A stretch of DNA of 64,000 bases, taken from the IMG/VR virus record IMGVR_UViG_3300019458_000020, positions 186,814 through 250,813 of that record, one strand, 5' to 3'. Each line of letters begins with the position of its first letter. Position 1 is the first letter of the stretch. The position numbers and the translations under genes are program-made. Positions 6,821 through 8,330 of the stretch are shown here, in pieces. The notes beneath the pieces were generated by a model, which had not been told where the DNA came from, made no database searches, and saw nothing but the letters and a program-made list of their open reading frames with translations.

Positions 6821-7225
6821 TTAATTGTTTACTGTTTCTTTACTTACCAAATACTGACGATTGGCTTCTATTTTCGCCAACTTTAATTCCTCTAACATTT
6901 GTGTAACAGTCTTTCTGTATTCATTGATAAGAGAATACCATCTTATAATTCCGTTAACATCTTTGTATTTGTTAAATACTAAAGAATATCTTTCATTTGT
7001 CTCTCGCAACTCTTTCTGGAATCCTTCTTGTAAATCCCACAACTCACGGTAATAATTGGATTTAGCTCCCCTTTTATTCATAATTTTTTCGGATTTGGAG
7101 AAAATTTGTGCGTGAATCTTACGAACAAATTTCATATCTCGAATAGATTCACTCAATTCGTTGTATTTTTTCTTCCAATCGCAACGATAGGTTAAATATT
7201 CTTGTTTAGTCGTAAATGTTATCAT
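6821..7225 (-). CDS. hypothetical protein
   Basis: ATGA overlap with the pth2 stop. Confidence 0.7.
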   Translation of the reverse strand: MITFTTKQEYLTYRCDWKKKYNELSESIRDMKFVRKIHAQIFSKSEKIMNKRGAKSNYYRELWDLQEGFQKELRETNERYSLVFNKYKDVNGIIRWYSLINEYRKTVTQMLEELKLAKIEANRQYLVSKETVNN

Positions 7226-7614
7226 AGTAATTTTAGTTTATTTGTTATATGTTGAATTTGTTCTTTGGTAGCCGGTCCAATACCTAAAGCTGTGACTGTT
7301 GATTCACCACCAAAAAAGTTTGGACAACCAGAATCGACCACAACATAAGTGGATAATCCGGCTGCCTTGGCTTCATAAGCAATTCTATGAAGTTCAGAGA
7401 GACTGGAAACTTTTAAACAAATTTTAGTTCCCGGAGATTGAGGAAAATCTTTATGATATTCGGATAAAGCATGTTGATTTTTACAATTTAAAAAGGCACC
7501 CAAAAAGGCATGACCAGCTTGTGCGGCAATTTTACCAGGCTCCATACCCAAATCTGTTCGGATTAAGGCGTAAAGTCTGTATGTATTACCTTGAGTCTAG
7601 TATTCGTTATTCAT
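7222..7614 (-). CDS. pth2: peptidyl-tRNA hydrolase Pth2 family, in-frame UAG at codon 6
   Basis: RLYALIRTDLGMEPGKIAAQAGHA...TKICL...VVVDSG...TALGIGP; ATG at 7614, TAG at 7599-7597; the ORF-track start at 7551 omits the first conserved strand. Confidence 0.9.
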
Positions 7615-7641
7615 AGTTTTATTGGTTGATGTTTGTGAAAT

Positions 7642-7696
7642 TGGCGGTTGGGCATTGACTTGAACAATGAGAGACAGCTAAACTGTCATCCCAACC
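7642..7696 (-). ncRNA. 55-nt mini-tRNA A (acceptor, one hairpin, T arm, CCA)
   Basis: GGTTGGG AT GACAG TTTAG CTGTC TCT CATTG TTCAAGT CAATG CCCAACC G CCA. Confidence 0.85.
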
Positions 7697-7697
7697 T

Positions 7698-7750
7698 TGG
7701 TGGTCAAGAGAAGTCCTACTTCTTGGATTTGATAAACAAATACCTTGACC
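7698..7750 (-). ncRNA. 53-nt mini-tRNA B
   Basis: GGTCAAG GT ATTTG TTTAT CAAAT CCA AGAAG TAGGA CTTCT CTTGACC A CCA. Confidence 0.8.
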
Positions 7751-7755
7751 GAAAT

Positions 7756-7941
7756 TGGTGCTCGGGGAAGGACTCGAACCTTCAACATCAGAACTTTCGT
7801 TCCAATCCATTCGTCTCTCGACGGGAAGACAATAGGGATATACTTCCACCATACACTCCTTCACGGTTCCTTCAAAACGCCCTACGTATGACGTATGAAT
7901 CCTACTAAATGAACTTGTGCCCTTTATTCTGGTACCCAAGC
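7756..7941 (-). ncRNA. 186-nt tRNA-like RNA C with a large structured insert
   Basis: Acceptor GCTTGGG/CCCGAGC, T arm GAAGG-TTCGAGT-CCTTC, ACCA; insert contains GNRA-capped hairpins and no anticodon arm. Confidence 0.75.
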
Positions 7942-7944
7942 AAA

Positions 7945-7999
7945 TGGTGGTCAAGGAAGGAATTGAACCTTCATATATTCCTAAAGAATAATCTTGACC
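7945..7999 (-). ncRNA. 55-nt mini-tRNA D
   Basis: GGTCAAG AT TATTC TTTAG GAATA TAT GAAGG TTCAATT CCTTC CTTGACC A CCA. Confidence 0.85.
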
Positions 8000-8004
8000 G
8001 TAAA

Positions 8005-8126
8005 TGGTGGTTGATGTGGAATTGAACCACACCTTCGTAATATTTTGCAACCTTTTCACGAAGTCCTGACCTTTACTCAAACGATTACTTACGCGTTTCA
8101 TCGTTTTTTCGCTTTCAGTTTCAACC
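8005..8126 (-). ncRNA. 122-nt tRNA-like RNA E with two non-tRNA hairpins
   Basis: Acceptor GGTTGA/TCAACC, T arm TGTGG-TTCAATT-CCACA, ACCA; inner stems AAACGAT/ATCGTTT and CTTCGT/ACGAAG. Confidence 0.7.
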
Positions 8127-8135
8127 ATAAAAAAA

Positions 8136-8211
8136 TGGCGCCCCATGTGGGAGTTGAACCCACACGAAATTGTTTTAGAGACAACTGCTCTACCAATTGA
8201 GCTAATGAGGC
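8136..8211 (-). tRNA. amber suppressor tRNA (anticodon CUA)
   Basis: 76-nt canonical cloverleaf: GCCTCAT/ATGGGGC, D arm GCTC/GAGC, GTTGT-CTCTAAA-ACAAT, GTGGG-TTCAACT-CCCAC, G73, CCA. Confidence 0.92.
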
Positions 8212-8295
8212 GTAATGAGGATAGAATGTTGGCTTCGGTGTTTTCACCGTTGCCTTTAGAAACCTATGTTGGTTTAATATTCATTCTATTAATAA

Positions 8296-8323
8296 CTATA
8301 TACCAATTTCGTGTTTTGTCAAG
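8296..8323 (-). promoter_or_regulatory. sigma70-like promoter of the suppressor/mini-tRNA/pth2 unit
   Basis: TTGACA-16 nt-TATAGT on the minus strand. Confidence 0.65.
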
Positions 8324-8330
8324 AAAAAAA

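Follow-up and report, generated by a model that had tools for sequence, protein, structure and literature searches.

The stretch of DNA analysed here, hereafter called the window, comprises the final 64 kb of an IMG/VR contig of 250.8 kb (IMGVR_UViG_3300019458_000020, positions 186,814 to 250,813) and derives from a jumbo phage with a G+C content of 37.5%. It contains a compact minus-strand cassette in which a promoter is followed, in this order, by a short leader open reading frame (ORF), an amber-suppressor transfer RNA, tRNA(CUA), five tRNA-like RNAs, here called E1 to E5, and pth2, a gene for a predicted peptidyl-tRNA hydrolase that is interrupted by an early in-frame TAG (Table 1). A preliminary description had proposed that these parts form one module in which the suppressor allows the synthesis of Pth2; the features on which it was built, i.e. 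a TTGACA-16-TATAGT promoter ahead of tRNA(CUA), five CCA-ended elements lying 1-9 nucleotides (nt) apart behind it, and a full-length pth2 with UAG as codon 6, were all recovered. Related loci are designated by L-numbers below and the window locus by W.

Table 1. Features of the cassette, followed by neighbouring and more distant features of the window mentioned in the text
Feature	Position	Strand	Remarks
pth2 (peptidyl-tRNA hydrolase, archaeal/eukaryotic type)	7222..7614	-	ATG at 7614; TAG at 7597-7599 is codon 6; stop at 7222
Amber-suppressor tRNA(CUA)	8136..8211	-	ARAGORN; Rfam tRNA 66.3 bits
Sigma-70-type promoter TTGACA-16-TATAGT	8295..8322	-	-35 at 8322-8317; -10 at 8300-8295
Leader mini-ORF MNIKPT	8264..8284	-	From sequence; ATG, five codons and TAG (8266-8264)
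Small hairpin CGGUG-AAAA-CACCG	8236..8249	-	15 nt after leader TAG; flagged as inverted repeat
Open frame from leader ATG through TAG, tRNA and E1-E5	7619..8284	-	Ends with TAA (7621-7619), 4 nt before pth2 ATG
E1, tRNA-like RNA, 124 nt	8005..8128	-	Acceptor stem, T arm, CCA, insert of ~85 nt; fold z-score -2.88
E2, mini mimic, 55 nt	7945..7999	-	Loop UUUAG; fold z-score -3.45; covariance model 73.7 bits
E3, tRNA-like RNA, 186 nt	7756..7941	-	Structured insert; GAAA-capped stem replaces anticodon arm
E4, mini, type B, 53 nt	7698..7750	-	Loop UUUAU; 6-bp triloop hairpin replaces T arm; covariance model 62.4 bits
E5, mini mimic, 55 nt	7642..7696	-	Loop UUUAG; G73; fold z-score -3.52; covariance model 76.2 bits
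Intrinsic terminator of upstream gene	8332..8359	-	12-bp stem, then T run
Phage transfer-messenger RNA (tmRNA)	10429..10836	-	ARAGORN; Rfam 107.5 bits; 2.2 kb upstream of cassette
T4 Rnl1-type RNA ligase	24237-25331	+
ClpX-like ATPase	51673-52926	-
Thg1-like 3'-5' nucleotidyltransferase	54783-55613	-

The cassette begins a separate transcription unit, given that the gene upstream of it (8398-9015) is closed by an intrinsic terminator, and it is probably the first such unit of the translation island of this jumbo phage. Its strong promoter, predicted to drive a polycistronic RNA, fits 11 of the 12 consensus positions, was the top-scoring one of the region in a consensus scan and is conserved in 12 related cassettes. 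The RNA genes behind it are tightly packed: 7-9 nt separate tRNA(CUA) from E1, and the following spacers measure 5 nt (E1-E2), 3 nt (E2-E3), 5 nt (E3-E4) and 1 nt (E4-E5). When the DNA of the cassette was compared with GenBank phages, the only match was one of 77 nt to a tRNA.

The product of pth2 is predicted to be a peptidyl-tRNA hydrolase of the Pth2 type, and all searches that bear on this were run with the piece 3' of the TAG, not with a read-through protein. This piece covers Pfam PTH2 in full (PF01981, positions 1-115 of 115; E = 1.3e-26; 93.5 bits at a cut-off of 23) and aligns with chain residues 3-115 of 2zv3, a 115-residue archaeal Pth2 structure (E = 1.4e-15); 1xty, 1wn2 and 1q7s are further relatives in the PDB, and the closest cultured Pth2 is at most 41% identical in protein comparison. 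The domain stays in the same frame across the TAG, without a frameshift. The next start behind the TAG is a TTG at 7551, the use of which would delete the first beta-strand, so that a complete Pth2 domain requires UAG codon 6 to be read as sense.

IMG/VR searches that used first the Pth2 piece and afterwards four aligned relatives as query yielded 30 loci, to which a metagenome scan added more. We found 25 distinct pth2 genes or contexts in which an early in-frame stop, single or double, precedes the domain and no ATG separates the two, the nearest stop lying 1-40 codons upstream of a conserved block TLRLYAxVRTDLGM. This set comprises all Pth2 that are at least 41% identical to that of the window, together with L021 (36%), L023 (32%) and the Pth2 of the cultured phages Atu_ph07 (40%) and Phosso (38%). 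The stop, which we refer to as the gate, is TAG in 23 genes, TAA in one and TGA in one, and it is doubled in L002/L008, L006, L016 and L013. An ATG or GTG is present 2-10 codons upstream of the gate in 15 of the 25; for the other ten a script found no start within 12 codons, and these include the loci with two gates and those in which the only ATG lies upstream of an in-frame tRNA. The base 3' of the gate is a purine in 24 of the 25 contexts; a purine after the stop codon favours nonsense suppression, as is known from classical suppressor genetics.

The identity of the gate follows that of the suppressor encoded by the phage, i.e. TAG goes with an anticodon CUA, TAA with UUA and TGA with UCA. 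A matching suppressor tRNA lies on the same strand within 1.5 kb upstream in 12 of the 16 distinct gated viral contigs (tRNA(CUA) in 11, tRNA(UUA) in one). The latter is L013, in which a tRNA(UUA) (Rfam 66 bits) precedes two TAA gates by 130 nt. Gated contigs with no suppressor next to pth2 are L006, L014, L018 and L020. The synteny that the preliminary description had asked to be checked is thus borne out, since tRNA(CUA) immediately adjoins pth2 on its upstream side in many relatives and the tRNA-like RNAs share the cassette in the nearest ones. Both cultured phages carry the gate: in Agrobacterium phage Atu_ph07 (L060, MF403008; 1426-1875) an ATG is followed by five codons, TGA, 18 codons and the domain, and in Sinorhizobium phage Phosso (L063, PV764938; 1081-1575) pth2 begins with ATG AAG TAT TAG GTT. 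Atu_ph07 has a tRNA(UCA) gene and yet uses TGA as its commonest stop, at the end of 267 genes (PMC6102473), so that this phage is plainly not recoded.

More distant Pth2 (L022, L024-L028, L030, phiM12 and RsoM2USA) are ungated and have an ordinary start of the form M..KQVI..; no suppressor tRNA was seen beside the ungated pth2 loci among those scanned. In the gated genes, which are 32-85% identical, the stop is always located within the non-conserved N-terminal tail and never elsewhere in pth2. The ungated enzymes do without this tail, so the residue inserted at the gate can hardly matter. Position in a dispensable tail, tracking of the anticodon and presence in a phage that is not recoded together indicate that the stop serves control and not ordinary recoding. 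We infer, with good comparative support, that the UAG in pth2 is a deliberate gate, and the earlier proposal that the suppressor permits Pth2 synthesis is supported by the retention of an early stop in all 25 genes and by its match to the suppressor. Full-text literature searches found no published description of a suppressor-matched pth2 gate.

The tRNA(CUA) of the window folds into a canonical cloverleaf with a 7-nt anticodon loop CUCUAAA, U33, G73 and an encoded CCA, and by this predicted structure it is a nonsense-suppressor tRNA. As to its amino-acid identity, comparison with the other tRNAs of the window gives sequence identities of 49-66%, and none of these tRNAs stands out as its parent. 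The 109 long ORFs of the window end in TAA (53), TGA (52) or TAG (4), and each of the four that end in TAG is backed by another stop 2-18 codons further on. In-frame TAG occurs within the 64 kb only in pth2, in the leader ORF and perhaps in a possible gene at 53235-53594. A scan of the window for further genes with an early TAG gate revealed no clear additional case, and the motif ACATAGGTTTC, searched for elsewhere in the window, was found in the leader only. Comparing ORF lengths under alternative stop sets did not discriminate TAG read-through in this window of small genes.

The possible gene at 53235-53594 (minus strand) fills a gap between called ORFs and is broken by one in-frame TAG. 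It would encode a small holin-like membrane protein of ~115 residues in which two to three hydrophobic segments are followed by a strongly charged tail at the C-terminus, and it is possibly a second suppressor-dependent gene. In L011/L012 two tandem tRNA(CUA) genes stand upstream of the gated pth2, and an odd 91-nt tRNA(AUA) stands downstream of it. Phosso (L064) has a 93-nt tRNA(UAU) with a long variable arm at 13345-13437, followed by an HNH endonuclease gene; for Atu_ph07, too, the published table of genes (PMC6102473) lists tRNA-Sup(UCA) ahead of an HNH endonuclease gene.

Two simpler accounts of the TAG have to be considered. On the one hand, the phage may use genetic code 15, in which TAG is a plain sense codon, and the TAG in pth2 would then be incidental and without a regulatory role. 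The scarcity of TAG as a terminator, its backing by later stops, the combination of TAG avoidance with a phage-borne suppressor tRNA and the additional TAG-interrupted candidate at 53235-53594 all agree with such an account. Incidental sense codons, however, should neither be confined to the early tail of pth2 across such divergent genes nor turn into TAA or TGA where the suppressor reads UUA or UCA; moreover, almost no other gene of the window contains TAG, and Atu_ph07 uses its gate codon as its commonest stop. We consider code 15 as the full explanation rather unlikely. On the other hand, pth2 might start at an internal TTG or ATG (7551/7545), which would leave the upstream ATG...TAG as an unrelated mini-ORF. 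Gene callers and GenBank annotators have made this choice in the cultured phages, where the annotated pth2 coding sequences (AUZ95035.1 of Atu_ph07 and XYS97424.1 of Phosso) start at an internal methionine and omit the first beta-strand along with the gated N-terminus, and the ORF listing of the window likewise gives 7222-7551. Against it, the residues between gate and methionine (T/xLRLYAxVRTDLGM) are conserved as protein in all relatives and correspond to Pfam positions 1-15, i.e. to beta-strand 1 of the solved Pth2 structures, which makes an internal start very improbable.

A second stop of the same kind opens the cassette. The leader ATG is placed ~10 nt after the -10 box, so that the messenger RNA is nearly leaderless, and the context ACA/ACG TAG GTT TC at the end of the leader ORF is common to L015, L003, L004 and 12 cassettes. 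The hairpin that follows recurs in relatives 12-18 nt past the TAG, with stems that have changed and yet still pair when judged by eye on the alignment; RNAalifold returned no consensus structure for the leader alignment, which contains gaps. Weak matches to the Rfam His_leader family are at chance level, and no terminator/antiterminator pair was identified.

From the leader ATG a single frame runs through the TAG, tRNA(CUA) and all five tRNA-like RNAs. In the window it spans 221 codons, of which the 214 after the TAG are stop-free, while the other two frames contain 8 and 14 TAA or TGA; none of 2000 shuffled sequences was stop-free. The leader frame of 12 diverged cassettes is similarly open over 147-243 codons against 1-14 TAA or TGA in the other two frames, and for each cassette a stop-free shuffle has a probability of between <0.0005 and 0.0085. 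For W, L045, L057 and L059 the end of the frame falls at the pth2 start. In L004/L010, L007 and L011 the leader ATG, TAG, tRNA(CUA), a further TAG and Pth2 all share one frame, and no ATG follows the tRNA. In L003 the leader frame crosses the tRNA and the ORF of an HNH endonuclease (3560-3975), which is inserted between tRNA(CUA) and pth2, and extends as far as the pth2 ATG, with which it overlaps; a duplication of the leader motif ATGAATAATAC...ACATAGGTTTC on both sides suggests that tRNA and leader moved as a unit.

In each of the five tRNA-like RNAs, or mimics, an acceptor stem of 6-7 bp is combined with a discriminator base and an encoded CCA, and a canonical T arm, its loop reading UUCRANU, is present in all except E4. 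ARAGORN calls none of them as a tRNA. Rfam, at gathering as well as at permissive thresholds, gives them nothing beyond sub-threshold similarity to tRNA, mascRNA, tmRNA and YrlA; against the canonical tRNA model (RF00005) only E2 scores at all, with 24.9 bits (threshold 29) and with the D and anticodon regions deleted. The mini mimics consist of a 7-bp acceptor stem, 2 nt, a 5-bp stem with the pentaloop UUYAG, 3 nt, the T arm, the discriminator and CCA. E2, E4 and E5 align without gaps with two copies from L015, the closest relative of the window phage (Pth2 76% identical, 279-kb contig), and in this alignment pairing extends to 98.8% of the cells, with compensatory changes in 13 of 17 pairs. 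A relaxed pattern derived from the minis found 23 metagenome stretches, and a search with a covariance model gave 46 copies, which represent 37 distinct sequences. Aligned, the 37 are paired in 99.4% of the cells and have undergone compensatory changes in 16 of 17 pairs; since this alignment was fitted to the covariance model, it is biased toward structure. The closing pair of the pentaloop (alignment columns 14/29) is Watson-Crick in about 99% of the minis and covaries between G-C, A-U and C-G, a standard pair being formed wherever the sequence has letters in these columns. Minis of type B are also known from L039, L045, L051, L052 and L057. The E3 family has nine homologues of 184-197 nt with compensatory changes in 26 of 35 predicted pairs, and E1, which is weakly similar to element F5 of L015, is the least well supported of the five.

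The minis and E3 homologues come from ~15-20 distinct contigs, with invariant loop and T-loop motifs, and the mimics are confined to contigs that are phage-like. The mini pattern is absent from 185,579 bacterial and archaeal genomes (one per species); in its strict form it occurs in IMG/VR only in the two phages already known, and the covariance model found no extra copies in the window or, apart from L015, in the 30 Pth2 loci. Within relatives the mimics lie 0-5 nt from neighbouring RNA genes and are mixed with ordinary tRNAs, and they stand downstream of tRNA(CUA) in every cassette of which the upstream end was captured. These cassettes also contain full cloverleaves with odd anticodon regions, none of which reaches the Rfam threshold (L049, L052, L054, L055, L047, L041, L059, L046 and L043). 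They have 8-nt A-rich loops (CCUUAAAA, CCUAAAAA, CCUCAGAA, UGUAAAAA) or an anticodon stem capped by GCAA or GAAA, and ARAGORN gives them anticodon labels such as 'ttaa', 'aa' and 'gcaa'. On this comparative basis E1-E5 are taken to be real structured RNAs without a usable anticodon loop, presumably released by RNase P like tRNAs.

Several other readings of these RNAs were weighed. Decay of tRNA genes into functionless pseudogenes would account for the failure of ARAGORN and Rfam to call them, yet in the 37 minis and nine E3 homologues almost all pairs show compensatory changes and the loop and T-loop motifs are invariant, which makes it scarcely conceivable. Nor is it at all likely that the 221-codon frame is a real protein gene and that the RNA structures come second to it. 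Chance would very seldom leave so long a frame open, but its translation has no Pfam match and substitutions preserve base pairs; because the order and number of the RNA elements differ among relatives, the frame encodes no conserved protein. The preliminary description had suggested that the mimics act at stop codons, in which case they would be D-arm-less suppressors or A-site blockers that present UUA or UCA at UAA or UGA: the loop U-U-Y-A-G is readable as U33, anticodon UUA or UCA and a purine 37, and the layout resembles that of D-arm-less mitochondrial tRNA-Ser. In place of the 7-nt anticodon loop of such decoding tRNAs there is a pentaloop closed by a covarying Watson-Crick pair on an arm of only 5 bp, and this makes the reading of the loop as an anticodon unconvincing. 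Sister mimics in the same cassettes are GNRA-capped or carry long inserts, and suppression of the codons that end 105 of the 109 long ORFs would harm the phage, so that a role at stop codons is quite unlikely and this part of the earlier proposal is not supported. Alternatively, UUUAG loops may pair with the anticodon loop of tRNA(CUA) (CUAAA, positions 34-38) and sequester, protect or chaperone the suppressor. Five contiguous complementary bases and the constant proximity of minis and tRNA(CUA) speak for such pairing; about half of the minis, however, have UUCAG, which mismatches CUAAA, and L040/L042, L044, L048/L050, L039 and L041 have UUCAG minis only while their tRNA is still CUA, which leaves pairing an unlikely function. 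For a further family considered, the HDV-like (hepatitis delta virus-like) or theta ribozymes, Rfam gave no match, be it in 7500-8400 (E <= 10) or in L054 (E <= 1).

We favour the reading that the cassette is a suppressor-dependent expression circuit within the translation island, and on sequence comparison we put its probability slightly above one half (roughly 0.55). Pth2 would be made only when, and in proportion as, the phage suppressor is active. Where the suppressor competes with release factor at UAG, ribosomes would pause, enter 3' regions and shed peptidyl-tRNA, and the gated Pth2 would then be supplied to recycle peptidyl-tRNA or N-blocked aminoacyl-tRNA. More weakly inferred is a role of the leader UAG as a second sensor of suppressor activity. 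With little suppressor, ribosomes would stop at this codon, and the RNA downstream could fold and yield tRNA and mimics on processing; if the suppressor is abundant, ribosomes would traverse the unprocessed RNA and be delivered to the pth2 start just beyond the end of the frame. Read-through of the leader would in this way damp maturation of the suppressor and raise the output of Pth2.

The part of the mimics in this circuit is its least certain component. Recognition by RNase P, the CCA-adding enzyme, EF-Tu and Pth, as well as by some synthetases and several acceptor-end toxins, is directed at the acceptor/T half of a tRNA. As the mimics have kept the acceptor-end features and discarded the parts needed at the ribosome, they may be non-decoding derivatives of phage tRNA-Leu, cut by RNase P, that act via this half, either as decoys or sponges for a host factor recognising tRNA 3' ends or as amino-acid carriers kept off the ribosome. 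The acceptor stems of the minis are nearest to those of the phages' own tRNA-Leu (GGUCAUG, GGGCGUG, A73), and their loop can also be read as U33 followed by a Leu anticodon UAG or CAG.

A number of observations weigh against this circuit as a whole or against parts of it. That TAG rarely ends ORFs, and hence may be largely a sense codon, would make the gate less special. In Atu_ph07 the suppressor is located far from pth2, and its tRNA(UCA) is preceded by an ordinary ORF and not by a leader gate; in Phosso no tRNA(CUA) was found in the 50 kb around the position equivalent to that of the Atu_ph07 suppressor, where the 93-nt tRNA(UAU) alone turned up. The preliminary description saw no obvious terminator between the parts, but the T arm of tRNA(CUA) together with a U7 run (8169-8129) was flagged as terminator-like by a consensus scan. 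This run (8129-8135, minus strand) directly follows the CCA of tRNA(CUA) and is replaced by a mere UUUU in relatives; it may act as a processing signal or as a partial terminator at which some of the transcripts end. The long frame of L042 and L054 stops inside an RNA element. Descent of the minis from tRNA-Leu is no more than hinted at, the similarity extending over the 7 nt of the acceptor stem. Finally, mimic cassettes without pth2 exist (L042, L049, L054 and L055), so the mimics are not obligate partners of Pth2, and the earlier idea that this Pth2 clears peptidyl-RNA derived from them is weakened; as pth2 moreover precedes the mimics in L043, L046 and L056, they appear to be tied more closely to tRNA(CUA) than to Pth2.

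A wider reading, which we hold tentatively and consider less probable than not, joins all parts of the cassette into a feedback circuit of a tRNA operon. The suppressor tRNA and the mimics would lie inside an ORF whose only stop is the one that this tRNA reads, and the leader UAG would decide between processing of the RNA and translation up to the gated Pth2. The mimics would then be a new class of miniaturised tRNA-Leu RNAs that act on host enzymes or on defence toxins directed at acceptor ends.

Among known regulatory systems, prfB, the gene of release factor 2, has an early in-frame UGA that is passed by a +1 frameshift, and its product acts on the same codon. As in prfB, an early 5' in-frame stop of pth2 would sense the balance between termination and reading on and set the output of a translation factor; unlike in prfB, the frame is unchanged, the suppressor tRNA is what is sensed and the hydrolase reads no codons. 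The lambda bar minigenes, ORFs of 2-10 codons that are toxic to pth-deficient hosts, are a classic source of peptidyl-tRNA drop-off cleared by Pth (rap). The ATG of pth2 and its gate formally constitute such a minigene, but one that is fused in frame to a pth gene, whereas the bar minigenes are free-standing. The leader recalls attenuation by the trp and his leader peptides, in that a short leader ORF holds the sensed codon and the fate of the ribosome sets that of the downstream RNA; here, in contrast, the sensed codon is a stop and the regulated genes are a tRNA and tRNA-like RNAs. In T4, species I and II are small stable non-tRNA RNAs that are co-transcribed and co-processed with tRNAs and are not known to be linked to a suppressor tRNA or to pth. 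The mimics are likewise non-tRNA RNAs within a phage tRNA operon. Both T4 species are named, as stable RNAs from the tRNA gene cluster of that phage, in PMC2330249.

The mimics also resemble the tRNA-like domain of tmRNA and mascRNA, as these combine an acceptor stem and a T arm with tRNA-like processing and have no decoding anticodon. The scores of a mini remain below the gathering thresholds of Rfam (24.1 bits against 42.5 for mascRNA, 20.1 against 47 for tmRNA). Unlike tmRNA, the minis have U3-A70 in place of the alanine identity pair G3-U70 and no mRNA-like domain, and unlike the minis, mascRNA is eukaryotic and receives its CCA after transcription.

Stop-recoded phages with suppressor-dependent late and lysis genes and with 'code-change modules' have been described by Borges et al. 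(bioRxiv 10.1101/2021.08.26.457843). The cassette is like these modules in that a phage suppressor tRNA licenses genes with in-frame stops, the proposed role being the timing of expression. It differs from the genome-wide recoding of structural and lysis genes reported there, since one quality-control gene carries one or two initial stops matched to the suppressor, and since the gate of pth2 is also found in a phage, Atu_ph07, that keeps that codon as its main stop; Borges et al. make no mention of Pth, tmRNA or tRNA mimics. That PTH2 is found across jumbo phages was reported by Iyer et al. 2021 (PMC7824862), who proposed that it aids ribosome rescue after tRNA cleavage and who are silent on an in-frame stop, a link with suppressor tRNAs and tRNA mimics. 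Theta ribozymes, which are minimal HDV-like ribozymes, adjoin phage suppressor tRNAs and trim their 3' trailers (bioRxiv 10.1101/2023.06.13.544163). Like the mimics they are small structured RNAs directly beside phage suppressor tRNAs; they are self-cleaving double pseudoknots, whereas the mimics are derived from cloverleaves and end in CCA. None of the closest concepts, i.e. suppression in recoded phages, prfB, bar minigenes, attenuation and the stable RNAs of T4, covers the whole of the cassette.

The gate leads to a concrete prediction, namely that a phage with a nonsense suppressor wires a quality-control enzyme to this suppressor by means of a stop-codon lock, and the two cultured phages that carry it make the lock testable now. 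An ORF that depends on a tRNA and contains, in frame, the gene of this very tRNA is not known to have been described before, and the same applies to a frame of 150-240 codons kept open across structured-RNA genes; if true, the in-frame tRNA and the open frame would constitute a new coupling of RNA processing to translation. The 55-nt and ~186-nt RNAs represent well-supported new families of tRNA mimics from phage-like contigs only. RNAs reduced to the acceptor/T half are candidates for decoys, sponges or non-ribosomal amino-acid carriers, and defence by targeting of tRNAs is an active field. Gene callers miss or truncate gated pth2 genes, and they miss the mimics entirely.

The surroundings of the cassette fit a translation-maintenance island. 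ARAGORN and Rfam detect nine tRNA genes and one tmRNA in the window. The tmRNA encodes a tag of 27 residues ending in AVAA; it is placed likewise in L045 and L059 and lies ~7.9 kb upstream in L055. Genes for tRNA-Leu(UAG) and tRNA-Ala(UGC) are found downstream of the cassette. The Rnl1-type RNA ligase, the Thg1-like enzyme and the ClpX-like ATPase (Table 1) suggest a toolkit for tRNA repair and quality control, and the first two of these, although encoded elsewhere in the window, fit the island together with the tmRNA and the tRNAs. The tRNA-Gln(UUG) at 20468-20537 (plus strand) is weak, with 34.7 bits in Rfam, a length of 70 nt and, unlike the other tRNAs of the window, no encoded CCA. A homing-type endonuclease gene with GIY-YIG and NUMOD3 domains (36848-37681, plus strand) overlaps with its 3' end, including its TAG stop, the tRNA-Arg(UCU) at 37641-37715 on the minus strand.

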